Assembly (NCBI GenBank): GCA_965112155.1
Contig: OZ218098.1
From: Podarcis liolepis
Taxonomy: Eukaryota
Reading direction: 5' to 3' (one strand)
Length of the DNA: 64,000 bases
Below, one piece after another: positions 4,824 to 64,000 of this stretch. How positions within the stretch are numbered: position 1 is the stretch's first letter; each line of letters starts with the position of its first letter. Under the pieces are notes generated by a model, which was not told where the DNA came from, made no database searches, and saw only the letters and a program-made list of their open reading frames with translations. The position numbers were made by a program, and so were the translations under genes.

Positions 4824-6853
4824 CAAAAAATAATGTTTCTTTGGCTTGCTTCTTGGCCTGTGTGTGGAATGCTGAATGAAGGGCCATGAGGAAAATGACC
4901 CTACCTTCTTCATGAGTCAGAATTCCAACTGATTCAGACCAAGCAAGCAGTGTAGTTGTTTCACCGAAGCCCCAAACTACGTTCCCATTGTCCCGAATAG
5001 GGAAAGAAGTGCAGCAGAGGTGCACGTTTAACTGCCTGACATCTCTTCACATGACTAACATGTGAAGGAGGCTCTTAGAAGGCAACTTGGTGAGTTCAAC
5101 TCCAGCAGTTCTTACTCAAATAAAGCCATCACTATGATTAATGGCATTCTCAAATGCCCTGCTTTACAATTCATATCTCCTTTCTCTTCAGAACAGCCCT
5201 GTGAGGGCCAATGACCTTCACAGCTGTGCTGAGATGTGTCCCTGAAAATAGTGCTCTATGCACTGTACCACAAATCCTGCGATGAGCGTGGCACTCCACA
5301 GGGTTCACTAAACCCCCCTCCCAGCCTCCTTTCCTGAAATAGAAAGTTTTGCTGCTGGATTCAAATCTCAGGCGAAGGGAAACTGAGGTGGGGGAAGAGT
5401 GGAATAAGGACAGCCTTGCTCACATCTGTGTGTTCAGGTGTTAAATTGCACCGAACAATAAAATCTGAGAAGTTAAAAGCAGTTGGATATCTTCCTGCAC
5501 TCAGAGAGAGCAAGTTTCCACCTTAAATACATTAAATTGTACAGCAGCANNNNNNNNNNNNNNNNNNNNNNNNNNNNNNNNNNNNNNNNNNNNNNNNNNN
5601 NNNNNNNNNNNNNNNNNNNNNNNNNNNNNNNNNNNNNNNNNNNNNNNNNNNNNNNNNNNNNNNNNNNNNNNNNNNNNNNNNNNNNNNNNNNNNNNNNNNN
5701 NNNNNNNNNNNNNNCGCGCTAAGCGGGTCACATGTTGTGTCTTTCAGCCATATTTAGGTCACAGGGTGTTCCTCCCCCCCTTTATTTTTGGAGGGGGCAG
5801 ATAGGAACAGTCTAGCTGCTCACAAAGGCAAGGGGCACGACGAACCCTTTAATGCAGGTACTCGGTGTCCGTAAAAAGAAGCACGCACACAAACACACAC
5901 CAATTGCCGCTCAGATCCGTGATGCACAAACAGAAGGCAGGGAGCTGGATACGCTGAAAACTGTACGGAAACGCTATGAGCCTGCAAATACTGCACCGCA
6001 CCCTATTAAAAATAAATAGACGTACAAATAAAGAACCTGCCCATGATGCCAAAACAATACCCTACACAAACACTGTGTAATAGAATGAAATAACGTTACC
6101 CTCCCACCTCCCTCTCTTTCTCCCCTCTCTTTTCGCCCAACTGCATGATACCTAGAGCGATGTGTCCCGTACAAAAAGTAAACGAACTGTAAAAAAGGAC
6201 TATGAATCAAAACCGGAGATGCTGTACATACTCTTCGCTGTTTGTTTTGCAACACAAAAAAATCTTCAGTAAAAACTAATTAGAAAGTAAATAAATAAGC
6301 TGTTCCCTATTCTGTTGTGCAAAATGAGAGCTCTCCTCCTCACACACACCCAGCTCATATTCCCTCTGTGAGTGCTTAGCTGGCCTGTAAGAGAACAGAA
6401 AAGAAAGGGATACCTAAAATAACAAGCTCTTCCACCTCCACCCAAATTTAACTCTCCCCCCACACCCGACATGTATAACTTTAGAAAGAAAGAATACATG
6501 TATTCAAATCAGGACACCTTCCTATATTTCAGGCCCAGATAGATGTCCCTCCTTAATGACGCTGATACACTTCAGTGATGGAAGAATAGAACCTCTGAGC
6601 CACTGCTTATATTAGAATTTGTTCTACTTGTCATTAAAGTGGGCCTGATGCAGATGCACAAACCTTGGGGAGAGCAGCGCCAGCTGCAGGATGAGCCCTT
6701 TGGGATAAGCAAACTTTCAAAGAGAATCGAGCCCAGGAACAACTGGTTCCTTTTGTTTAAAGGAGAAGGTGTCTATGCCGCGTGCAAATTGGCTAGGTCC
6801 ACTGACACTGATAAAGTCACCTCCTTCATTTTCCAGTCTAACAATGCAGAGTA

Positions 6854-7775: not shown

Positions 7776-8864
7776 GTTTGAACCAAACCAAACCATGAAC
7801 ATTGGTCCATGTGTAATGCTAAGCCAGTGAATTTGTTTGTTTCCTCCCACAGCAGCAAAGGGAGGAGAGAGGTGGATATGACTGAACTGCATGAAACAGA
7901 ATGCTGCTTGTTCACAGTAATCCATAGTTTATGGTTTACTATTACATGAAAACCAGGTCAATGTATGAAGAAACACTTATTAGTCATTGCCACAGTGATA
8001 GATGAGAGAAAAACCTTCATTAACAATCCCCCCCATACTTGTCCGTCTACTCTAATTTTATTTTTTATATTTCACCTATGAAAAAGTTTTTTTAAAAAAA
8101 TAAATAAATCCCTGTGTTGTTTTCAAAATAAGTTGAATAGGCTTTTAAAATACAGTGTACTCGCCTGTATCTTGACCAACATAAGCAATTTCAGTTTGAC
8201 ATCAATTAGCAAGTTGCNNNNNNNNNNNNNNNNNNNNNNNNNNNNNNNNNNNNNNNNNNNNNNNNNNNNNNNNNNNNNNNNNNNNNNNNNNNNNNNNNNN
8301 NNNNNNNNNNNNNNNNNNNNNNNNNNNNNNNNNNNNNNNNNNNNNNNNNNNNNNNNNNNNNNNNNNNNNNNNNNNNNNNNNNNNNNNNNNNNNNNNNNNN
8401 NNNNNNNNNNNNNNNNNNNNNNNNNNNNNCAGGCTTCTGAGGTCAAAATTGGCACCCTTTCCTATTTGTTATTGGGAGATCATAGCACATGAGTTCGTAA
8501 AAACAGTGACATGTGCCTAAGCTCAGTTTGCAAAGTAATTTAGAGAGGGTGGGCACTTAATGGAACGCCACTCCATGCTCTCTCATAAATAAAGGTCGTG
8601 CGAGCCCTTTTCTCATGAAGACCTGTTATCACTTCCACATATTCTCTTTGGGATGAATTGAGAGGTGCAGGTCTCCAGTTAGAAAGGAGTATTTGTTTTT
8701 GTAAAGGTTTAGATGGATCAATAAACTATTGATGGGGGATAGGGCAAGAGTGGATCCTTTGATTTGTTTAGTTGTGTTGAGAGCAGGAGAATTCTGGTCA
8801 GTTCCTGGCCCACTCGAGACTGCTGACTACAACCCAGTCCTGACCTTGCATTTATGGTGGCACT

Positions 8865-28066: not shown

Positions 28067-30958
28067 ATGTATAAGGTCATTCCCCCCCCCCCACACCTCA
28101 TATTATTCAGTTTGACAAATACTTCTAACATTCGTTGCCAACAGTATTGTAGAAGACACAAGATTCTTGGAAGTGTACTCTGGGTCATTATCCTATATGC
28201 ACATCCCTGAGAATAAATTCCATGGAATTTACTTCTCTGAGTAAATGTACATAGAACAGGACTGTTGACTTGGCACAGTTCTTCAGTATTTGAACGTGAC
28301 TAAATTTTTTTAGACACTTTTTCTTCATGTGAAAAGAGTGCACATGATGGGCAAGGAGAAAACCAATTCCATGCCTTTGTCCTCAACTTCCCAAAGTCAG
28401 AATCCATCTAGAATTCCCCTCTTCCCCCAAATGTTGGCTGTTTGGTCGGATCTAATAGTCTTCAAACACCAGAAAAGAAGAGTCAGGTTTTTCGCTCCTC
28501 AAATGATACTTACAAGGCCATTCTCTCTCCCTCTTTAGTTTAAAAATGAGGTTGATAATGATAATGTTCCTCCCATAGAGAATCTCCTACTTTTTAATGA
28601 TACCCATAGTTTCCCCTTTACATAAATGNNNNNNNNNNNNNNNNNNNNNNNNNNNNNNNNNNNNNNNNNNNNNNNNNNNNNNNNNNNNNNNNNNNNNNNN
28701 NNNNNNNNNNNNNNNNNNNNNNNNNNNNNNNNNNNNNNNNNNNNNNNNNNNNNNNNNNNGGCATCTGTGTCAGTAACCCTGTGTTCCTTAAACAATTGTA
28801 TACATACATTCTCCTAAGTGTTGTTGCTCACAGGATTTTGCAAGTGAAATTCCTTTCTGGTGCTATACCACTGAGATGTTAAAACTAAAAACAGCAAAAA
28901 AAGAAAAGGGGGGGAAAGCTTATATTTCCCTTCCTATATCAAAGCCACGTGGAGCCAAATGAAATAGAATTATCTGGAGTTTACTGTACCTTATCCCGAC
29001 AGCCACTCAGTGTAACACGTCATAAGCATGATCACATAAGGCTGAGAGTTATTTAGTAATACCATGTTGGAAATGTATTTAGTAATGCAACAGAAAGTGT
29101 ATATTTTAAAGATAAGAAGATCCAAATTAAATAATCTGAAATACAATGATGAAAAGCATGTGCTATATACTACAGCAAGAGGTAGCAAACCTGTGGTCTT
29201 CCAGATATTTCTGGACTGCATCCCAACATCCCTGACTCTTGGCCATGTTGGTCGAGGCTGAAGGGAGTTGGAGTCCAACACTATCCGGAAGGCCACAGGG
29301 CCTCCACCTCTGGACCATGGCTTTTGCTGACCTGGTCGTAGTTCTGCATGCCTTAGTCACATCTAGTTTGGATGGTCACAGCACTTTGACATGGAGTGGT
29401 CTCTGAAGATTCAGAAACTTCAGCAGGCACAAAATGCTGTTTCAAGCGCTCTTGAAGCAGGTTAACTCTGCTGCGGAATCACCTGCGCTGGCTATTGGTT
29501 TGTTTCCAGGTACAATTGAATGTACCACTGCGGACTTAAACTATTTAAGAACAAGGTATCTAAACTAAGGACTGCCTGCATTTATATGAATCTGTCCATT
29601 CATTAAGGTTATTTGGCAAGATCGTTTGTGAATTGTTCCACCACTGGCTTAGCAATTGTCCAAAATACACAAGAAAGCCTTTTCTGTTTTAAAATCCAGA
29701 ATGTGGAACTGGCAGTCCAGGGAGTAGCCAATATAGCAGGTTTGCCTCAGGGATAACTAATGTAGGGTTGGACTTCAACTCCCATCATCCCTGACCATTG
29801 GTGAAGCTGGCTATGGCTGATAGGAGTTGTAGTTCAACATTATGTAGGACACCATATTGTCTGCCCTTGGTCTAACTTATTCCACTGCTGACTGAAAGAG
29901 TGTTGCATTTTTGCTGAGCTTTTAGTACTGCTTTAAACAGTTTTCATTTACTGGCTCGTTATTGTTTTGGGTTGCTGTTGGCTTTCACTTTCACTTTGCT
30001 GTATATCTGATTGTTGTTGTTGTTGTTTACTCCAAACTGGTGGTATTATCTGTAAACCACCCTGAGCAAGTCCGTTAGAAACAAGAAAGGCAAGATATGC
30101 ATCTCTTTAGTAAATAATGAAATACATAATCAACATCCCTACTCTTTCAAACTGTTTGTAGATAATGACAGACTGAGACAAAAAATGGAATTATTTACAG
30201 GATGCAGAATCCTGCTATGGACTTCATTGTGAAACTAAAATTATGTTTGGAGCAAAACTACCAAGTTAGTCCATTTCTCAAGCATGGGCAGAGTGAATTT
30301 GAATGTAAGTGTTCCTCAAAAGAAAACAAAATGGTTGCATTTTTGCTTTATGAATGTGAAAGGTGAAGGCCTTTTATAACAATAGCTTACAGACAGGTAA
30401 GATTGTTCCTGCAGAAGAGAAGGGCTTTGAAACCTATCCCCAGATAGCCTTGGACAAGTCCCATAGACTTCAATAGGACTTTGCCATCTGATTTTGGCTG
30501 GTATGGTCTAGTGCAGGAATAGCCAACTGGCAGCCCATACATGGTCCCTTAAGCCATTTGATCTGGCCCATTGCAGCCCCACTGAGTTTTAATCCAAATG
30601 TATCATCACTGTTACATTTGGATTACTGTTGTTAAAGAATAGTGGATTCGTTGCACCCAGATTCAGTGAAATCTGACACCATGAAGGACAGGGAGATAAC
30701 TTATTCAGCAGCAGTAGGAAAGATAGAAACAGGCCATAAATTTGATTTCCACAAGGGCTTTTTAAGTTACGTTTCCTTAGGCAAAGGTACTTGCTCAGGA
30801 GAAAGGTAAGGGTTGGGGGGTGGGTTTAAGAAGAATGGTCAGGGATCTGCTGCCACTCCTAGGATCTGCCACCTGATGCCATTGCCCCATTCTGTCTAAT
30901 GGTAAGGCTGGTCCTAAAATGTGAAGTGAAAAATTTACATTTCCAGAAGTCTGGAATA

Positions 30959-34806: not shown

Positions 34807-35331
34807 GCTTTATTATTATTATTTTTAAGCCGAAGCCTGATAGCAGTATCAGGCCCACCGCTAGAATTCATTTTTCAAACCCTTTCCATCAAGCATTGAA
34901 TTCAAGTCACAATAGCCATGTTGAAGCTGCATATCCCAGAAGTCCACACATCCTTGACTCTTATTCCAGAGCCAGTTTTCTTTTGAGGGCAGGCCTATGG
35001 CCAGGTCAATGCCTGAGTCTATTTCCTTGGCTGCTCTCACCCCCTTCTCCTTGGGCTCATGGGAGATTGAGGTATGTGGAGGAGCAGCTGCAGCGAAGGC
35101 AGCTGAAGATTGCTCCAAATATTGGCCCCCACTGTAGTATGGCAGACATTTACTTCATCCATTCCTCTTCCAGCCACTGAGTCCAGAACAAAGCAATATG
35201 CCCTTCATGCAGAGACACAATCTGATGCTTAAACTATACCGTTAGCCCTGTGGCATATTTATTCAACTGATTAATTTGATCCTAGGTATTTTACTCAAGT
35301 TGTGACACCTAGAAAGTCCTGTTGTCTAGAG

Positions 35332-36508
35332 CAGTGTTTCCCAACCTTTTTTGGGCAAAGGCACACTTGTTTCATGAAAAAAATCTCAAGGCACACCACC
35401 ATTAGAAAATGTTTAAAAAATTAACTCTGTGCCTATATTGACTACCCTAATTTTCGCCCTATAGGACGCACCGGCCCATAGGACGTACCTAGATTTTGGG
35501 GGGGAAATAAAGGGAAAAAAATTATTCCCCCCCCCCAGACGCGGGGCTGGGGCGGGAGAAGCCCGAGCTTCCCCCGACCCCAGCCCCCAGAATGGGAGCC
35601 AGAGTGGCTCCCGGAGCTTGCGGGACTGGGGGTGGGGGAAGCCCGAGCTTCCCCCGCCCCCAGCCCCCAGAAAGGGTCCGAGAGCGATGGCAAAGGTGAG
35701 CGCACCTTCGCCATCACTCCCAGAGCTTGCGGGGCTGGAGGTGGGGGAAGCCAGAGCTTCCCCCACCCCCAGTCCCCAGAAAGGGTCCGAGAGCGATGGC
35801 AAAGGTGAGCGCACCTTCGCCATCACTCCCAGAGCTTGCGGGGCTGGAGGTGGGGGAAGCCAGAGCTTCCCCCACCCCCAGCCCCCAGAAAGGGTCCGAG
35901 AGCGATGGCGAAGGTGAGCGCACCTTTGCCATTGCTCCCGGAGCTTGCAGGAGCTGGGGGTGGTGGAAGCCCGAGCTTCCCCCGCCCCCAGCCGCCAGAG
36001 CAGGTCAGAGAGCGATGGCGAAGGTGTGCGCACCTTCGCCATCGCTCTGGGACCTTGCGCGGGCTGGGGGCGGGGGAAGCCGGAGCTTCTCCCGTCCCCA
36101 GCCGGCAGAGCAGGTCGGAGAGCGATGGCGAAGGTGTGCGCACCTTCGCCATCGCTCTGGGACCTTGCGCGGGCTGGGGGCGGGGGAAGCCGGAGCTTCC
36201 CCCCTCCCCAGCCCCCCGAACAGGTCAGAGAGCGATGGCGATGGTGTGCGCACGTTCGCCATCGCTCTCGGGGCTTGGGAGGCTGCGGGCGGGGGAAGCT
36301 GGAGCTTCCCCCGACCCCAGCCCCCCGAACGGGTTGGAGAGCGATGGCAAAGGTGCGCGCAGCTTTGGCATCGCTCTGGGAGCTTGCGCGGAGCTTGCGC
36401 GGCTGGGGGGATAGCTTCCTTAAGCCTGGGGAGCCTCCCTCCCACGGCACACTAGGCAACGTCTCACGGCACACTAGTGTGCCGCGGAACACCGGTTGGG
36501 AAACACTG
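35332..36508. mobile_element. Non-autonomous hAT element, same family termini as 43517-44686, different cargo
   Basis: TIRs CAGTGTTTCCCAACC / GGTTGGGAAACACTG; perfect 8-bp TSD GTCTAGAG (35324-35331, 36509-36516), fitting the Charlie-type NTCTAGAN target; last ~73 bp differ from the other copy at 3 positions. Confidence 0.93.
35540..36415. repeat. GC-rich tandem array, ~7 units of 109-110 bp, each with two palindromes
   Basis: GAGAGCGATGGC recurs at 35680, 35789, 35898, 36008, 36118, 36228, 36337; hairpins GAGAGCGATGGCGAAGGTG-tgcg-CACCTTCGCCATCGCTCT and GGGGCTGGGGGYGGGGGAAGC-nnnn-GCTTCCCCCRCCCCCAGCCCC. Confidence 0.92.
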
Positions 36509-38974
36509 GTCTAGAGATCATGGATCTCTCTTCCCTCCCCATCCCTCTGTCTACCTGGATCCCTTTCTCTTTTCTTTTTGTCTTCCTTTCTCTCCTCATG
36601 CAGAGTTTCTCTTTATGTATTTCCTTCTTTACGCTTTCACATGGCATTTCCTGGGGGGGGGGGATTCTGGCTTAGGGTGTGGGTGAGGTGGCACATTGTT
36701 TTTCCGTCCCGGACGTTGACAAAGAAAAGAAAAGAAGAAGCAGTGAAATTCGGCCATTGACAATAAAACAGAATCTCTGCCCAACAAACAGCTCTGTAGT
36801 GTAATGTTTTGAAAAGGCTTCCAGACAATCCACTTCAGACAGAAGGATGAAACCCACAGGGAAGGCCAAGGGCCCTTTATAGACACTCAGAGGAAAGTGG
36901 AAAAATAAGATGTAACACCCTGAAGTTTGATAAGTACATCCTCAGTCACGGCCTTTTTAGGTGAGAATTTCCAGAGGAAGGCACTCAAAAGGACATTAAG
37001 ATTCTCCTTAGGGGATTAATCACTGTTTTGGTTGTTACCTTTTGTTATAGCCATGACACCCAGTAACCCTTGTGGCTCAAGACAACAGATGTCCTTTTGT
37101 GCATCTGTTTTAAAGGGAAAATGTTTGCTTTCTCCTTAAAGTGTGGGTGCATATCTTTTTATAAATACACACATGCACGCGCACACACACACACACACAC
37201 ACACACGTATGTAATAAAGTGCTAACCAGCTGTAAGATTAGTATGGTAACTAATTTGAGAAGGTGATGGACAGATTATAAATTTGATTACAGAAATTCTT
37301 TTTTCAAACGTCATTTCCTCCCTCCATCTATGCCTCATTTTGATGGAGAAGTGTATCCCCTTACACTTAAAAAAAAAAAAAAACACCAACCAACCTTAAG
37401 AGCATGTTATGAAAAATAACAAAGAATAGCTGAGAACTCTGAAAGTGAATGGCACTTCAGATGAAGTTTAGCAAATTAAGTCATTGACCTGCAGAGGAGA
37501 TTAATACCAAACAAGGTGCCCCTTCTTCTGAAGTAATGAATATTCTTCAAACAGCAAGGGAGCACTGACTGCTGTTTGATGCTGATGACATTGAAAATTT
37601 AGGAGAAGAGAAATTCCATCATTTTTCATTTGTATGCAAATGCGCCTGTTCCAGAAATTAACCCCTGAACCCCATGTCAGTTTTCATCTGGAGGAATTCT
37701 CTCTTGCCAGCGCCACACAGAGCAGCCTTGTTGCTGTCCCGGGGTCACTGGGGCTTCCCCATGTAAAGCTAAACAAAACACATTAGGTGGGGGGGGGGAG
37801 AAGCAGCAGTGGGATTGGGGGGTTAGTGAAAGGGACCAAACCAGAATGTCAGGCTTTGTTTACCCCTTCCCTCCCTCCCACACCGCCCATTAGAGCAATA
37901 GAAGCAGAGGCACCTTGTAAAATGCACTTTTCCAACGCAGGGCCCTGCATTCGAGCATAATTGAAATGCAAAAGGCGGCCCAGCCGTTCACAGCCACCAC
38001 TAATCACTTCCACTAGTCTTAAGGTGAACCATGGGACAATATACAAATCCTATTGCTCTTCCTTTCAGGCAGGTCTTTGGCTGTTAGAAAAGTCCCTTTG
38101 TGTCTTAGCACCTTAGACAAATGCCACTATCTGCATGTGAAGGGGAAAGAGGTGATTGAGGGTCCCCCCCCCTTAAATTGATGTGGATTTAATTATGCTA
38201 ATTTAGACAGCTGTAAAGCTCCCTCCCCTTCTTTCCTACAGTCGCATAAAGGGACCAGCAAATACAGGTGTCCTTCACTCCAGGCGTTTAATATTTAACC
38301 TCAGCAGTTTTTGTAAAGAGAAGGCAAATGCTTTGGTAATGGTTAACAAGCACAGACAGTTTCCTAAAGGCTTAATGGAGGAACTCTTAACATTTAATAC
38401 TTCCGCATGACAACCTTACAGGTCTCCCAGAAGGAAACACAAAGCAAAGGGGGCCCTTCCCATCCCAGCATTGTATATAAAAAATCTCCCAAATGTGAAC
38501 TGGGCCTGAGTCTGTGAGCTAGGGTGGGGAGATATACAGCGAACAGAACCCACTCACAGAACCAAATCAGGAGATGCAGAAGTTGGTACGCAATAAGAGT
38601 GACCACGCACACATCGTCAAAAAAAGCGGAGGGGAAATGTATCACAAAAAGGATAGAACCTGATACCATGTTGCATTGAAATTTGTATACGCCAATAATT
38701 TTGAAAGAATTACTATAATTGAAATAGAAACGCAATCCATCTCACCATGAGGAAGACTGCAACCAGGCATCCTGTGTGTCTGCTCAGGTGCTAAATGTTG
38801 GTCAGGATAATCAAGATAGACAAACAACAACAACAAAGATAATATGGGCACAACCTCCCTCCCACCCCCACCCCACAGAGTGTTTCTAAGTTGAACAAAA
38901 GGAATACAGAGTAGTGTGCACTATTAAACAATAAAATACAGAGACATTGGATTCTTATCTTATTATACATGACT

Positions 38975-42280: not shown

Positions 42281-43257
42281 ATAGGAAAATGTAGCTATTG
42301 CAAAATATATACTTGTCAGCTTCTTTAACTTCAGCAGAACAAAGGTTTTAGTGCAGTGTTCCAGTTTTGTGTACTGCGTCTGGAGAGGGAGCAAAAAAAA
42401 AAGAAAAGCATCTGTTCTTTATGTTCTGCTCACAATTTATGCTCAATATCCAGGTGTAGTTGGGGACTTATATGTGCAATAAAGTTCAAGATGCTAAAAC
42501 ACTGTTTAGACCAGAAACATTATAAGAAGCTGATTCCAACTGGGAGTGTTTGGAGTACCAAATGGATAGCTCTGTAACCTGCTAAATATATAGCACAACG
42601 TCCTTAAGCCACAAACAACTGATGATGATAGACAGTCCTGCTGTAATAATGGTCAACCTGCTGTGTGCTGCTTACCTTCCCCAAAGCACTTATTAACTAA
42701 TTAATCCCCACAACAACTTCATGAGGTAGATAGGTAAGCATTATTATCCCATTAGGTAAGTATTAAGCTTGGTTATCCCACTAAATAAGTATTAAGGCCT
42801 CCCATTTTGCTGGGGATACTGAGGACAACAGGTTAAGTTACTTACCAAAGAAGCTGGTAACAGAAAGCTGAGAATAGAACTCCATCTCCCAGCCTTCAGT
42901 CTCTCTCCAAGCTTGATAAGGTCATTACCTGGACTTTATTGTAATATGCACACAGCAAAGAACACAAGCAGCTACAACTTGCACCCTGGAGGTGTTTCAC
43001 CAAATGTCACCAATGGTCATCAAATGGGGTTATATGATGAACTGTGCGAGAGCTGTTGCTCTGAAGATATTAAAGTGAAATAGCAATGCTTTAACAAGAT
43101 CATTTTACAGGCAAAGCGAAAACAGAGTTACACTTTCAAAGCGTAATTTTCTGTTCTATTTACATCTTATTTATTTAATCAATAACTTTCTCACAGGGGG
43201 TGCAGTATATGCACTTTTGGGTTTTTTAACCTTACACTGATGTGTGTCCTCCTAAGG

Positions 43258-43508
43258 CAGGGGTCAGCAAAGTTTTTCAGCAGGGGACCAGTCCACTGTC
43301 CCTCAGACCTTGGGGGGGGGGCGGACTATATTTTGAAGGAAAAAAAGAACGCATTCCTATGCCCCACAAAGAACCTAGAGATGCATTTTAAATAAAAGGA
43401 CACATTCTACTCATGTAAAAACAAGCTGATTCCCAGACCATCTGAGGGCCGGATTTAGAAGGTGATTCGGCCGGATCTGGCCCTCAGGCCTTAGTTTGCC
43501 TACCCATG
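43258..43508. mobile_element. hAT MITE (Charlie-like), 251 bp
   Basis: Imperfect TIRs CAGGGGTCAGCAAA / TTTGCCTACCCATG; TSD TCCTAAGG at 43250-43257 and 43509-43516. Confidence 0.85.
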
Positions 43509-43566
43509 TCCTAAGGCAGTGTTTCCCAACCTTTTTTGGGCAAAGGCACACACCATTACAGCCCCG

Positions 43567-43574
43567 TGACGTCA
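43567..43574. promoter_or_regulatory. Full CRE palindrome inside the Pack-hAT left arm
   Basis: TGACGTCA within the inverted repeat CGTGACG...CGTCACG. Confidence 0.35.
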
Positions 43575-44003
43575 GCGCGCGGCGTCACGCCGGGAGGGAC
43601 GCACAAAAGTGTAAGTTTCAATTTTTTTCCCTCCCCCTTGCCGGGGAACCTCCAAGCTTTGGGGGTGGGGGGGGAGGAGGCAGCAAAGCGAGGGACTGAG
43701 GGACTCCTCCAATGACAAGGGTTGGGGAAGAAGAGAAAGGGCTATTCCGCTCCAGTCACGGGAGGGGAATATGTACTGGCCCAACTGGTGTGCGGTCTTC
43801 GGAAAGCGGGGTGCGGGAAGGAAGCCTAGGCTCGGGGTCCACCGACCTCGGCGGAGAAAGGCAACAACCGAAGCCTCCCGACGGTTTCGGGGGAGACGTT
43901 CAGAGCTTCCCTGGGAGTTTCTCAGCCTGCCTTTTGGAGGAAGAGGCGGAGGGGGCCTGGGGATGGCGGTGGCCTCGGCCTCGCCCTCCCTCCGTCCCTC
44001 TAC

Positions 44004-44406
44004 CTTTGTAGTGGACGCGCAGGTTGTTCTGCGAGAGGCCGATATAGCTGAATTTGTCCTTCAGGCTCCAGGAGCGCGGCAGCGGCGTCTCCTGCTCGTC
44101 TACGGCCGGGTAGAGCCGCTTGAGGCGCCGCTTGAGCTCCTTCTCCTGCTCGTTCAGGGCCGGGTCGCCGCCGTGAGGGAAGGGCGCCGGGGCGCTGCTG
44201 CTGCTGCTGCCGCCGCCGCTCCCAGCAGGCATGGGCCCAGCTGAGGCGGCTGTTGTGGTGGCGGCGGCGATAGCGGGCGGAGGAGGGGGCGGCGGCGGGT
44301 GGAGCAGGAGGGCGGCCGAGGCCGGTGAGGGAGTAGGGTTGCCCGGGGCATGAGGAGCCGTCGCCGGGAGTTGCTGCTGCTGTTGTTGCTGCTGCTGCCC
44401 GGACAT
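44004..44406 (-). pseudogene. RANBP9: Transposon-captured copy of RANBP9 (RanBPM) coding exon 1: poly-Q/poly-P N-terminus and start of the B30.2/SPRY domain
   Basis: ATG at 44406 (gccggcATG) gives [13 protein letters not shown]...[13 protein letters not shown]...[62 protein letters not shown], matching vertebrate RANBP9 as I recall it. It ends at a phase-1 donor AAAG|GTAGAG (44003), lies wholly between the hAT TIRs, and no exon 2 is visible in the window. Confidence 0.9.
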
Positions 44407-44713
44407 GCCGGCCTCCTCCTCGTCCGCTGTCTCGCGCTCCTCCCTTTTGCGTGCGCTGCCCCGCCGCCGCCCCATTGGCCGGGTCCTGTCAGCTGATCCT
44501 GTGTTATTTCCTGTGTTTGTGTGTGAGGGGAGAATGGAGAGAGAAACCTCGGCACCACCACCGCGGAGCCGCCCCCGGCTCGACGCGGATCCTCGCCGCC
44601 CGACTCGCCCGCCTCCCTCCCATGGCACACCAGGCAACGTCTCGCGGCACACTAGTGTGCCGCGGAACACCGGTTGGGAAACACTGTCCTAAGGGAACCA
44701 GTGACTATTAGTA

Positions 44714-45414
44714 TAAGGTTACCAAAAAATTTTCAAAGAATCCAGGGACACTTTTTTTTAAATAAAGAGAAATAAAAGTTATTTTTTAAAGTTGGTTTTT
44801 TTTTAAAAAAAGAAATAATATATTCTCTTCTGTGGTGTCCTCTGTCATGTGGCCTTCCTCTTGGAGCACTAGCTGCTGTGGAGTAGGCTCAGGTCAGTCC
44901 TTGCCCTCCCGGTGCTCTCCTACTTCAATGGTGCAGCAAATTCGGGGTTCCCCTCTTTTCCCCCCTTCCTCTTTCTCTCCCTTCCTTCTCCTTCTCCTCT
45001 CCTCCTCCTCTCTGCGTCAGCTCTGGGGTTTTCCCGCTGCCCGCTGGGCAGTTGGCCGGGTGGCCAGGCACTCTCACTCCTGGCTCGATTTGGGTTGGGG
45101 GGGGTCAGTGGTTCCCCCAGTTGATGCACCAGGCGTCTCCGGTTCTCCTTTGGCAGTGGCTGTGGTTGGCTAGCTTCAGGAGCTGCTCACTGCCGTGGCG
45201 CCTGCCATTTTGCCTTGCTGGAAGTCCCCATACGTCTTGTGCCACTGAACCAATCACACAAAATTCATTCCCTACTAATAAATCTACAACACCTAAAATA
45301 TAAATCTGGGGACATTAAATGAAATCCGGGGACATTCCGGGGACGGATTTTGTCCGGGGACAGATTGTAAATGTGGGGACTGTCCCCGGGAAACGGGGAC
45401 GTCTGGCAACCATA
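44714..45414. mobile_element. Non-autonomous hAT element (TAGGGTTGCCA-type TIR) with GC-rich interior
   Basis: Termini TAAGGTTACCA / TGGCAACCATA; perfect 8-bp TSD TATTAGTA (44706-44713, 45415-45422); subterminal GGGGAC repeats. Confidence 0.85.
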
Positions 45415-45655
45415 TATTAGTATCCTTAATTTAGTGCTGAAACAAACAATTGTGCTAAAACAGGTTCTGATAATGCTTTTTGCTTGTCTGGATGGCTGGT
45501 AGCAAGGGATGTGCATGTGTGAAGAAGCATGTTCCATGTTGTGGCAGGGGCTTGTAAAGGAAACTGAAAACTTCCCAGAATAATAGGATATCTTACCAGA
45601 AAGGATGCAAAATCTGGAGCTATGAGAATAGGATAGACATTCCAAATTCAGATTA

Positions 45656-45691
45656 AAACAAACAAACAAACAAACAAACAAACAAACAAAC
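45656..45691. repeat. (AAAC)n microsatellite
   Basis: Direct reading. Confidence 0.9.
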
Positions 45692-48600
45692 CACAGGTTA
45701 CATATTTGGGGGAGAACACAAAAAAGAATACCAGTTTGATGCATTTTATTCAATGAAATGTGAACTTTAAAAACAGTGCCATTAATTCTTTATGGGCTTG
45801 GTGATATCTCTATTCTTTTCATTTACTAATCCCACAATGTAAACGCAGCAAAGAAGGTAGGAGTTGCTCAATTTTGCATTTTCTTGTTTATGACTTACTC
45901 TGCACTGAACTTTTTTTTTTTTTAGTTGAATATATAGCCTATACCACGAAGTCCCTAGCTTTTGTGTTAGAAGATCCTGTAAGGCACAACATAATTTTCA
46001 GTTTATGATACTCTTTCAAGGCTGTTCAGCTAACTGATCTTTTATCTACAAAGCAACTACTGGGTAATCATTTGTGCTACTCAGTGACTCAAAATTAAAA
46101 ATAATGTTTCAGCACAACCGATAATAGTCAACAGTAGCTCTTAATGGAGAAACGTGTGGATGTGAAATAACAAGGGAACATGGTTTATGCTCATCTAATT
46201 AACGAACAGCATTTCAGAGAAGAAATCCATGCTGTGTACATTCTACAAAATGTAGGGAAGAAGGGGGGGCGGGAATAGAAATTCATCACTGAGTTTCTAA
46301 CACTGACTTTCACAAAGCTTTTTTTCTCTCTGCTTCTAACCTGACCTTTTCCCCAACGGTTTGTCTATAACTTAATATAACTCTAATTCTTTTGAAATAA
46401 TGTTCACAGTTAGCATAATTGGTGTTATATAGTTCTAAAGTACATTATGGAATATTCTGTCACTAGACACTAAATTGAAAATTTAAAGAAAATGATAGAA
46501 ATAGCTGTAAGGGAAAGAGTACCCTTTTAAATCTAATTTGCTATGCACCACAGTAGGGTAATGGATGCAATGAAAGTTCTTTTATTGAACTCCCATGTCC
46601 AAAAGGTATTTAGGTAGCAAAGGATGTTAAGCAGCCCCCCTGCACTCTTCCTTTAAGTGAAGATAGCAGGAAATAAGGTATATAGGTTTGTGTCCTCCCG
46701 GTTTTTATTTCCTCGGGAGTACATTTTATGCAAAGGGCACCTTAGGCTACTTAGCAGATCACAAAGGGTGCCCTAGACCCCCTCACTGTCTACATGAATG
46801 GAACTCTCAAAAGGGATGGCAGAAACCATGCAGGGAGTTAAATCCTTCAGGTGGGTCTTTTCAAATTCCAGTAGTGAAGAGTAGCTGGAGAATTGGTAAG
46901 GATTTCATTGGCCTCAGCAGGTTTGAGATCAAAAGCTCCTGTTTAAAAAAAAAGAAAGAAAGAAAGAGGGGGAAAAAACCCTGTTGGGAAATCTTAAAAC
47001 CTCTTTGTAATGTAACTTTAAAAAAGTTAACACAAAGAACCCTTCGACTGAAGCCTGTAACAGCATGAACAAAGAGGATATCAGAACCGATTCTATTAAG
47101 GGAAAGCTGACAGAAACATTCATTTATTTTAAAGAGCAACCCCAAGATATTCCACAAATTCTCTTTTAAAAAAAAAGAAAAGGAGTGTGTGGTAATTTGA
47201 CACACAGAGAAAGACAGAAGCTGAAAAGGAGCACAGTGCTGATGGCACACAAACAATCCATGTCCATCTCTCCATTTAAGCAAATGTGGGTTTTGAAAGA
47301 TTTCCAATTGTCTATAGTTATTGGGCGGCGGCGGCAGGAGGGGGGAGATGCAACAGTCATTTAATGCCCTCACAATAGCAACTCTGTATGTCAACTGTGC
47401 TTTTATTTAGATAATTCTTTTGAGTCGTCTGATTAAAACTGTGTAAGTTAACCAGCTAAAAACGTTAAAGAAACAATATTGACACACATTTTTCCTTACT
47501 GAAAATGACGCACACTTTTAGTGCTTCTGCTTGTCTGCCATAATTCTATAACTTACCCAGTATTTCCTCTATACGTTCTCTTCTAGAATTTCTACAGGGT
47601 GGGTTGGCAAGACAGCAAGGTATGCGTGTGGGGGTGTGTGGGAATTATATGTCCTGAGAATCACAGCTGAGTGAGCTCCTAAATTCAACCTGACACAAAA
47701 CATTTTTCAACCCAATTAATTAAAAACGATGGGTGCTCATCAGTCAGCTGGCACAGTTTTTCCCTCCAACCTTGTGCCAAACTGTTAGTTGTGCAGTCTG
47801 CTTAAAAAAAATAAAAATCTGGGACCGAGATTTTGATATTGATTATTAACAGATACCTGACCTGCTTCTGAGCAGCTCGCAGAAAATTAACTCCTTGAGC
47901 TCTGGTGCCTGAAATGAATGAGGCAGAGTTCTCTCTTATACTTTGCCATCGTCCTGTGCAACATTTCGGCATTTTCGAGTCACACTAAAATCAGTGGGTC
48001 CAAAGCGTATATACAACAATATGATTCTGTGTTGTGGCCGTCAATTGCAAGTAAGTCCCTGTTCATTTTTGTGGCGTCTAATGGCCCCTGCACTGAGAAA
48101 GTTAGTCTCCCATGAGCCCCACTGAAATCAATAAAACAAGTCAATCTCAGCTAACAAATTCCACTGGACTCAGTTCACTTTATATATTTTAATATTCTAT
48201 CCCACTCTTTCCTAACAGATCAAGGTGGATTCCAACACATTAAAAAACAGAGACAATCATGGTTTTGTAATTATAATGTTTAATGTTTTGAAGTCACTCT
48301 TTTTTTATGCACCGATATTAAATATTTAAAAGTGACACACATAACCTATCTACCTAAAAATATTGACACATATATTCTAAAATGCATAAAACATTATTTG
48401 ACTGTTGCTCCAATCCCAACAGAAAAAGTATTCTCTCTCCCCATAATAACCTTAGGGACTGAAAGCAAGCATGAGCAAAATATTTTACCAGATTTGTGGA
48501 AAATACTCAGGCTGGCATGCGGGTACATCTCCAAGGGTACATCTCCACCTAGAAGGTCTTGGCCCTCTATATGCCGCCATCACCCAGACTTGTCTCTCTG

Positions 48601-62016: not shown

Positions 62017-62466
62017 TGCAAAGCTAGCATGGATCTGTAATTAACACATATTCTGAAGTCAATACATTTCTTTTTGCTTAACTGGTCAGAATTTAAACCT
62101 TATCAAGGAATGTTGGCAAAGATCTAAGAGTGATTCAATAGAGCCCCCGAATTCTGAGTAAAAAATACAGTGGATTGACCAAGAAAGCTCTTTTTTTTTA
62201 AGTGCACATATGATGATGCNNNNNNNNNNNNNNNNNNNNNNNNNNNNNNNNNNNNNNNNNNNNNNNNNNNNNNNNNNNNNNNNNNNNNNNNNNNNNNNNN
62301 NNNNNNNNNNNNNNNNNNNNNNNNNNNNNNNNNNNNNNNNNNNNNNNNNNNNNNNNNNNNNNNNNNNNNNNNNNNNNNNNNNNGAAAAGTAAACAAGAAT
62401 ATGCATTTGAAATAAAGCAAACGCAAATCAACAGAGGGGAGGTATGTTCCTCAGTGCTCATACCTA

Positions 62467-62522
<56 letters not shown>

Positions 62523-64000
62523 AGGGAGGGAGGTGGAGAGGGAGCCAGCCTTGCTTAAGGGGAGCATAATGGGATGAAGGACAAATTGTAGCTTAGGCAG
62601 TCTGATCCTTTGTACTCTAAAGGCATGTTTTACACCTTGCTGTAAACAAGGGATAGTTAAACCATAATTGGCTAGTTGACCATCAGCATTCATTTACTAT
62701 GAAACCTGTTATTACAGAGTTAAAAGACGCTTCCCAGTGCCGATTCCTTGTTGTGAGAAGGAGAGTCAACCTGTCCTTGCCTAATATCAGATACAGCTCA
62801 GGCTGGCTCTTGTTCTATGGATGAGACACCAAGGTTTTAGGAAGGCCTCTGCTTGTGTTCCCATCCTCAGTTCATTGGGGGCCTCTGTTTTTAAGAGCCA
62901 GCAAGCAAAGGCAGGCACTGAAGTTTTCTCCTAAGTTTGTTGACAAAATAACGATCCCTACATTTTAATCGTCGTTAGAATTTTGAAAGGGCTAATTACC
63001 ACTGTTTACAGACAGGCCTTCTCTATTTGAAGCTCCACAAAGGTCAGGCCCTTTGCATGGATCACTTGCCTGCCCCTTTACTTGACCGGATTTGTTTTAA
63101 TGTGCCTCTAGATACCTCGTCAGAGTTGCAGGCTGAACTCTGAGAAAGCCCAGAGGAATTTTGTGCTGATTTAATGTTGAGGGTGTTGTCTTGGCTAGGG
63201 CTGGGGTTTTCTATGAGAAGTTCTGCTCTCTGCAACCAAGCTGCAAAGGATGGGAAAGAGAGACATACACAGACCCCCACCCACAAGGTTCCCACTGGAA
63301 AAGAAGCCCAGGACTACACTTGTGGCAGAAGCACATGTAGAGCAAGCCATCTCACACGTTAGGAGGGGACAAAAGGCACTTCTAGACAGTGGCTGTTTTG
63401 GGGGTGGGATTCAGTCACATACAGGCAAATTTAAGTTGCGAAGTTAAAGCTGACTAGGAGTTCTTCTGCAACAAACCCCCTTTGCTAAAAGACCAGACTT
63501 TTTGTGATAAGGGAAGTGACAGATAAAATACACTGGAAAGTGTGGGACAATGCTTGCTTTGATGCATCATCTAGTCTCTCTGCAAGCATGAATGTTCATT
63601 AAATAGCCAACATCATCTAATCCCCAGAATGAATAGTCAATAAACCTGAAAGTGCCCAGATAGAAGGGTGTAAGAGACAAGTGACTACTGGTGTAGAAGG
63701 TCACCAGATGACAAGGAGGGCAAGGCTCCTGTGCCTCTAAACAGCTAGTTTGAAGATATTTTTAGGTCACTTTTGCNNNNNNNNNNNNNNNNNNNNNNNN
63801 NNNNNNNNNNNNNNNNNNNNNNNNNNNNNNNNNNNNNNNNNNNNNNNNNNNNNNNNNNNNNNNNNNNNNNNNNNNNNNNNNNNNNNNNNNNNNNNNNNNN
63901 NNNNNNNNNNNNNNNNNNNNNNNNNNNNNNNNNNCAGAACAATCTTCTCTTCCAAGACAGAGGATCAGGCTAAAACAGTTCTCAACCCTAAAGGCTTAAT

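Follow-up and report, generated by a model that had tools for sequence, protein, structure and literature searches.

A RANBP9 first exon inside a non-autonomous hAT element of a wall lizard: a probable Pack-hAT family

Introduction

In plants, cut-and-paste transposons that capture gene fragments contribute greatly to the shuffling of exons and promoters. Among animals such capture is regarded as uncommon, with most cases being single-copy and most arising without transposition (Tan et al., 2021; PMC8277862). The locus described here, within a 64-kb window (the whole stretch of DNA that was analysed), raises the question of whether a first exon of RANBP9 on the minus strand is part of the gene, or is cargo carried by the transposon whose ends enclose it. 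The explanation that we consider probable is that this unit, element B, is a non-autonomous Pack-TIR (Pack-hAT) element: the 5' end of RANBP9 was captured once, the product was moved in trans, and short derivatives of it were amplified. This would be a vertebrate case in which a whole first exon was captured together with the promoter region and the splice donor, in which the chimeric element has demonstrably moved, and in which the deletion derivatives have been amplified to numbers well above the few copies known from earlier reports. In wall lizards these shortened forms appear to have reached hundreds or thousands of copies, with element B as a rare full-length version.

Structure of the element

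The limits of element B can be read directly from the sequence (Table 1). Its two TIRs are exact reverse complements (15/15), and the TSD is flush with both of them. A first-pass annotation had described a 1170-bp unit with perfect 15-bp TIRs and an 8-bp TSD; all of these are present, and the direct repeat is really 10/10 when the preceding TG is included (TGTCCTAAGG, repeat family D16). In the 64-kb window there are four exact copies of the 15-mer of the TIR, arranged in two inward-facing pairs, the chance expectation for an exact 15-mer in 64 kb being about 1e-4.

Table 1. Positions of element B, its parts, and the related or adjacent elements in the window
Feature	Position	Strand	Remarks
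Element C, 1177 bp	35332-36508	+	same shell as B; TSD GTCTAGAG at 35324-35331 and 36509-36516
Third copy of TCCTAAGG	43250-43257		left TSD of element A
Element A, 251-bp hAT-type MITE	43258-43508	+	degenerate TIRs CAGGGGTCAGCAAAG...CCTACCCATG
Left TSD of B, TCCTAAGG	43509-43516	.	doubles as right TSD of element A
Element B, 1170 bp	43517-44686		
5' shell	43517-43558	+	TIR CAGTGTTTCCCAACC at 43517-43531; subterminal sequence with one GGCACAC (43545)
Intron-like cargo, 444 bp	43559-44003	-	GT donor at 44003-44002; putative RANBP9 intron 1
RANBP9 coding exon 1 copy	44004-44406	-	ATG 44406-44404; 134 codons; split G 44004
5' flank or 5'UTR-like CpG-rich cargo with CCAAT	44407-44609	-	CpG observed/expected 1.01
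3' shell	44610-44686	+	GGCACAC at 44624 and 44646; inverted GTGTGCC at 44655; TIR 44672-44686
Right TSD of B, TCCTAAGG	44687-44694	.	

The TIR starts with CAGTG and so has the hAT terminal motif YARNG, which together with an 8-bp TSD is found in lizard hAT families (Novick et al., 2010; PMC3014272). In the TSDs of both B (TCC-TA-AGG) and C (GTC-TA-GAG), these being two sites only, TA is at positions 4-5, and the target consensus of the Buster-type (Buster/Charlie) hAT elements is nnnTAnnn (PMC3517528). No transposase ORF is present within element B. By its 8-bp TSD, its YARNG ends and its nnnTAnnn target, element B is a non-autonomous member of the hAT superfamily, in line with the earlier assignment to hAT.

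Element C, 8 kb from B, has the same shell around a quite different and unrelated interior, in which a 109-bp GC-rich tandem unit is repeated 7.1 times beside about 110 bp of other sequence, in place of gene DNA. The two elements have 35 identical nucleotides at the 5' end and 74 of 77 at the 3' end, with the subterminal motifs GGCACAC/GTGTGCC common to both shells, and their interiors share nothing. The shell of 42 + 77 bp is a genuine transposon family. Within it, B is peculiar in that its 5' shell lacks about 30 nucleotides that other members of the family have between two GGCACAC repeats; in three of the four read runs, loose ends at 43551 give the canonical sequence, TTGTTTCATGAAAAAAATCTCGAGGCACAC.

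The RANBP9 cargo

The cargo of B extends over about 1.05 kb (approximately 43559-44609) and comprises about 200 bp of CpG-island 5' flank, exon 1, the donor and intron-like DNA, the last of which would, from its contiguity only, be RANBP9 intron 1. The minus-strand ORF (44406-44005) is free of stops, reads MSGQ(Q)n...NNLRVHYK, and is followed by the split G at 44004 and the GT of the donor (AAG/GTAGAG). Judged by likeness, the source of the cargo is RANBP9 and not RANBP10, the ORF matching human RANBP9 with E=1.4e-34 and RANBP10 with E=8.5e-19. The sequence ATTGG at 44474-44478 is a CCAAT motif on the minus strand, and the CpG observed/expected ratio is 0.81 in element B and 0.23-0.32 in the 2-kb flanks. 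A search of the cargo for RNA genes gave no Rfam match. The cargo had previously been described as an uninterrupted 403-nt exon 1 with GC-rich upstream sequence, the CCAAT motif, a GT donor at 44003 and intron-like DNA. All of these parts are present, the intron-like one being 444 bp, and the frame is indeed open over its 134 codons, but in sense the exon is not intact. Pro115 of the motif SWSPKDK is Leu in B (SWSLKDK; CTG at 44064-44062), a CCG>CTG change of the CpG type. The other 12 of the 13 aligned sequences, including tuatara, gecko and wall lizard, all have Pro at this position, which is conserved from insects to mammals.

Four RANBP9/10-type proteins (P0007, P0037, P0003 and P0135) were compared with the window by tblastn. 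Their sole match is at 44169-44005, the conserved half of exon 1, and no RANBP9 exon 2 or later exon was found in the 44 kb downstream (1-44000, N runs excepted). The candidate reading of the window as the real RANBP9 locus was rejected on this result, as the search found no later exon anywhere in the window. There are five N runs, of irregular lengths between 131 and 212 bp (5550-5714, 8218-8429, 28629-28759, 62220-62383 and 63777-63934), and their flanks contain no RANBP9 coding remnant or obvious splice sites.

At position 44101 the window has T, and C is found in 17 of 17 RNA reads and in all contigs of two whole-genome runs. The RNA and DNA reads over the exon thus carry letters other than those of the window, and other copies of the exon must therefore exist. 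Private letters of B are 43713T, 43935T, 44063A and 44101T; those at 43713, 43935, 44452 and 44623 are all CpG>TpG, and altogether B carries at least five private CpG-decay changes. B is thus in decay, in the manner of methylated, unselected DNA, and is evolving as dead DNA. Given the lack of any later exon downstream, the change P115L, and the different letter at 44101 in the RNA, the clear conclusion is that B is a transposed, non-functional copy and not the RANBP9 gene. Since it is decaying, the biological consequence of this single copy is probably nil.

RNA reads over the shell and RANBP9 family are found on both strands, and include the joints of the short forms described below. There is a sense bias over the coding part (first mate on the plus strand 39.5 vs 8.0 at 44236-44356), in a stretch that has triplet repeats. 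At 44262, 56 of the 59 RNA reads have the T of the family, not the C of the window, and no splice from the donor at 44004 is present among the RNA rows listed. The proposal in the first-pass annotation that the element is a portable cassette of promoter, ATG and splice donor is thus a hypothesis for the family and unsupported for the B locus, the 17 RNA reads at 44101 having C and not the T of B, and the splice not being among the rows listed.

The insertion had also been called young. Of the words sampled from 43000-45200, the share present is at most 0.56 in each of 14 whole-genome data sets from four organisms, about what would be expected if only the flanks, element A and the multicopy parts were represented. 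The window letters at 43713, 43935 and 44101 are in no X1 or X4 contig (these runs are described below), and no contig bridging either junction of B, nor any empty-site joint, is among the joints and pieces listed. These results fit a rare insertion, or one found in the assembled animal only, with poor short-read recovery of GC-rich DNA as an alternative. The word share of at most 56% therefore agrees with a rare or lineage-specific insertion, while the private CpG-decay changes count against a very recent one.

Copies in the read data and in Podarcis muralis

Four read runs were compared with 42300-45900, of which X1 is from organism A and X4 from organism C. Words in the single-copy flank have a depth of about 99 in X1 and about 9.9 in X4. 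Summed word depth is a rough proxy that gives orders of magnitude only and not a copy number, and GC-rich triplet repeats in the cargo can draw in unrelated contigs at 90% likeness. On this rough scale, the shell bins amount to 1.1-1.7 million in X1 and 1.3e5 in X4, of the order of 10^4 times single copy, with the 3' shell in X1 at about 17,500 times the single-copy level. The outer cargo (43631-43751 and 44236-44598), the level of which depends on the species, has 4.9-5.9e5 in X1, about 5,000-6,000 times single copy, and 4e3-1.9e4 in X4, about 400-1,900 times. The middle 540 bp, containing the conserved half of the exon, the donor and the proximal intron, is only at about 3-80 times: 43873-43993 has 292 in X1 and 27.6 in X4 (about 3 times), and 43994-44235 has 765-2,568 and 532-803, respectively (about 8-80 times).

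The abundant short form is marked by two joints, namely 43704>44245, which skips 540 bp (X4 depth 5806, 23 RNA reads), and 44466>44548, which skips 81 bp including the CCAAT motif (X4 depth 5500, 30 RNA reads). The intron-like part 43559-43704 is also found in this abundant family. Rarer forms have the joints 43587>44131 (X1 depth 1739) and 43712>44089 (X4 depth 591), and 43702>44245 is also seen. The abundant short family is without 44467-44547, CCAAT included, so that the amplified form lacks part of the presumed core promoter.

All of the deletion forms (the four deletion joints, 44466>44548, and an exon-TIR fusion described below) are subsets of the colinear order of B. Moreover, 18 X1 contigs pass from the canonical 5' shell into the RANBP9 cargo at 43551/2, and since this shell-cargo junction is common to many contigs, the capture would have preceded the spread. 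The abundant family has A at 43581 and T at 44262, and B retains CpG at both sites, implying that it did not arise recently from the short family. In our reading, B is a founder-type long copy. The full segment would be present at about three loci per genome, B being one of them and the parental RANBP9 gene presumably another. The direction from long to short is the simplest account, on grounds of parsimony.

A search with the translation of the exon identified at least seven UniProt models from Podarcis muralis, 74-116 amino acids long, that derive from such copies (P0172, P0001, P0173, P0187, P0206, P0209 and P0012). They are annotated as 'uncharacterized protein', except that one is named RANBP10. 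In P0172, P0187, P0209 and P0012, VHYK is followed by the same intron-like tail as in the window (33 residues), with E where the window has K, this being the difference at 43935. In P0173 and P0206 the end of the exon is instead fused directly to the TIR GGTTGGGAAACACTG, giving VHYK-GWETL, in which GWETL is encoded by the TIR. Past GWETL these two models have different flank residues (D and I), which implies that they come from different insertion sites. Each of the P. muralis models has substitutions of its own (RLYL, ETLL, GRGMEG, GHCH and VHHK), of which RLYL and ETLL are two further CpG-type Pro>Leu changes. These model-specific changes point to at least seven separate P. muralis loci with the conserved half of the exon, annotated as genes. 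There is thus a practical cost: at least seven P. muralis 'genes', including the one named RANBP10, are transposon cargo.

It is worth adding that four of the models (P0187, P0206, P0209 and P0012) share the start EKELKRRL. This was considered as a common breakpoint and rejected, because it coincides with CAG/G, a possible modelled acceptor. It is also the point at which the RANBP10 homology begins, and it may be an effect of annotation.

Origin of the element

As in other Pack-TIRs, the ends of a single TIR element enclose non-TE host sequence in B, and, as in the multicopy ones, the same cargo is present at other sites with other flanks (18 X1 contigs, the read depth, and P0173 and P0206). 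The scheme that we consider probable is as follows. A transposon consisting of about 120 bp of ends would have taken in a DNA-level copy of about 1.05 kb from the 5' end of RANBP9, in a single capture that most likely involved template switching or gap repair during the repair or replication of a family member. Models of this kind (FoSTeST or gap repair, with template switching and then excision) have been described for animal Pack-TIRs (Tan et al., 2021; PMC8277862). The chimeric element would then have been moved in trans by a hAT transposase recognising the shell, and B would have inserted next to an older hAT MITE, at an 8-bp target with TA at its centre, duplicating TCCTAAGG. Internal deletion is the usual route to non-autonomous hAT derivatives, and here repeated internal deletions (by abortive gap repair of the Ac/Ds type) would have produced the shorter derivatives, of which one without 43705-44244 and 44467-44547 would have been amplified to about 10^2-10^3 or more copies. 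Capture at the DNA level followed by transposition had been proposed in the first-pass annotation, and is supported by the presence of the shell with other cargo and another TSD at C, by the shared shell-cargo junction, and by the exon-TIR models with different flanks.

The main alternative, which we regard as improbable, is acquisition in situ: a shell MITE or a short copy was already present here, a break in it was repaired from RANBP9 or from another copy, and the long cargo has never moved. It would have precedent, in that most animal Pack-TIRs arise independently of transposition (Tan et al., 2021; PMC8277862), and B's private loss from the 5' shell, between direct GGCACAC repeats, could be a mark of such repair; the long middle part is moreover present only about three times per genome. 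An event confined to this site is, however, difficult to reconcile with a shell-cargo junction at 43551/2 that is common to many other contigs, with an outer cargo that is multicopy and has many different flanks, or with several separate P. muralis loci that have the exon-intron tail. The nested deletion forms, of which there are at least four, require a long ancestor, and a typical short copy could not have been the ancestor of B, in which two CpGs lost from the short family are still present.

It is very unlikely that B is an artefact of assembly, that is, a multicopy element misplaced by the assembler. A misjoin would not duplicate the 8 bp of the local target perfectly and exactly at the border of both TIRs, and the private substitutions and private shell deletion are those expected of a real locus. 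The share of sampled words, never above 0.56 in the 14 runs, and the lack of X1 or X4 contigs with the window letters at 43713, 43935 and 44101 would agree with an artefact, but are equally explained by a rare or animal-specific insertion, or by poor recovery of DNA with 66-70% G+C.

Least credible of all, and largely refuted, is a native functional RANBP9 exon 1 whose inverted ends and direct repeat are incidental or come from two insertions: although the open ORF, ATG, donor, CCAAT motif and CpG-rich DNA are as in a gene, and intron 1 could exceed the available 44 kb (with three N runs downstream), the 8/8 (10/10) TSD is immediately next to exact 15-bp TIRs whose family has another member in the window, the shell pieces correspond to the left and right ends of a single element and not to two whole MITEs, P115L affects a residue conserved from insects to mammals, and there is no later exon downstream and no C at 44101, where all of the RNA reads and the contigs of two organisms have it.

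Comparison with known elements

Tan et al. (2021; Nat Commun 12:4280; PMC8277862) described 370 Pack-TIRs in 100 animal genomes, of which 208 were hAT, with a median cargo of 224 bp and with only 4 of the 370 being multicopy. An example is Pack-hAT-N8_XT of Xenopus tropicalis, which carries 291 bp of the CAPSL 5'UTR and has three insertions (PMC8277862). Elements of the same kind as B are therefore already known in animals, and the view of the first-pass annotation that gene capture is much less documented in vertebrates does not stand beside the 208 Pack-hAT cases. Element B resembles these in being non-autonomous, with non-TE host DNA between its TIRs, differing TSDs, and a cargo of exonic or 5'-end sequence. 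It differs in having a cargo of about 1.05 kb with a complete first coding exon and its donor, and in that the read depth, a rough measure, suggests hundreds to thousands of derivatives.

Plant Pack-MULE and Pack-TYPE elements (Pack-CACTA, Pack-hAT) similarly carry gene fragments between TIRs, are amplified, and are transcribed or annotated as pseudo-genes, and they share with B a bias to the GC-rich 5' ends of genes (PMC8903248, PMC6379663). B differs from them in superfamily and in host kingdom, and shows no fusion of fragments from several genes. The Ac/Ds-type series and the lizard hobo_AC families, which have filler DNA, are like B in having an 8-bp TSD and YARNG ends (Novick et al., 2010; PMC3014272). 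They too have derivatives with internal deletions or filler, and in a lizard genome the non-autonomous elements far outnumber the autonomous (PMC3014272), but the series to which B belongs is derived from an element that carried a gene and not from one that encoded a transposase.

In the TIR itself there is a likeness to the insect MITE family hAT2_NA. In Manduca sexta its TIR, CAGTGTTTCCCAAC, is the same as the first 14 nucleotides of the TIR of B (43517-43530), the TIRs of Bombyx, Rhodnius and Heliconius are one mismatch from it, and the 8-bp TSDs of these elements likewise have TA at positions 4-5 (PMC3845634). A literature search with the TIR string found only these insect MITEs. The likeness, which is between TIR strings alone, could indicate a related transposase group or horizontal transfer.

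No literature on gene-carrying hAT elements of lacertids was found. What is new here is the unusually complete cargo, and a family that appears to be far more amplified than any reported animal case, with roughly 10^4 copies of the shell by read depth, a middle 540 bp that is rare, and at least four internal-deletion forms. A stronger proposal, which we think unlikely as it stands, is that B is the founder form of the most amplified gene-carrying DNA transposon family so far known in an animal, that insertions of this family are still polymorphic, and that its captured CpG-island promoter drives sense transcription. If this were true, there would be about 10^3-10^4 derivatives with the RANBP9 promoter and ATG in one wall lizard species, and several-fold fewer in another, and the family would be seeding new transcription start sites and pseudo-genes throughout the genome.

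The adjacent element A

The order TSD, A, TSD, B, TSD extends over 43250-44694, and the third copy of TCCTAAGG implies that a single 8-bp target was used twice in turn by A and B, which belong to two different hAT families. The left junction of A is crossed by contigs of two organisms, and A is therefore older than B. A palindromic or cruciform target was considered as a reason for the three copies and rejected: the inverted repeat 43222-43241/44707-44728 scores 23, with shuffled sequences giving 18.3 on average and up to 31, and so does not exceed chance. A shared liking for TA-centred targets is a simpler reason for the stacking of A and B.

Words from the family of element A sum to 3.8-4.4 million in X1 and to 0.64-0.79 million in X4, which is some 4e4-8e4 times the level of single-copy sequence. 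This family is among the most abundant repeats of both genomes, and is abundant in RNA on both strands. Just to the right of B, 45190-45445 is a further multicopy repeat, with a depth in X1 of 3.6e4-1.9e5, compared to 99 for single-copy sequence.
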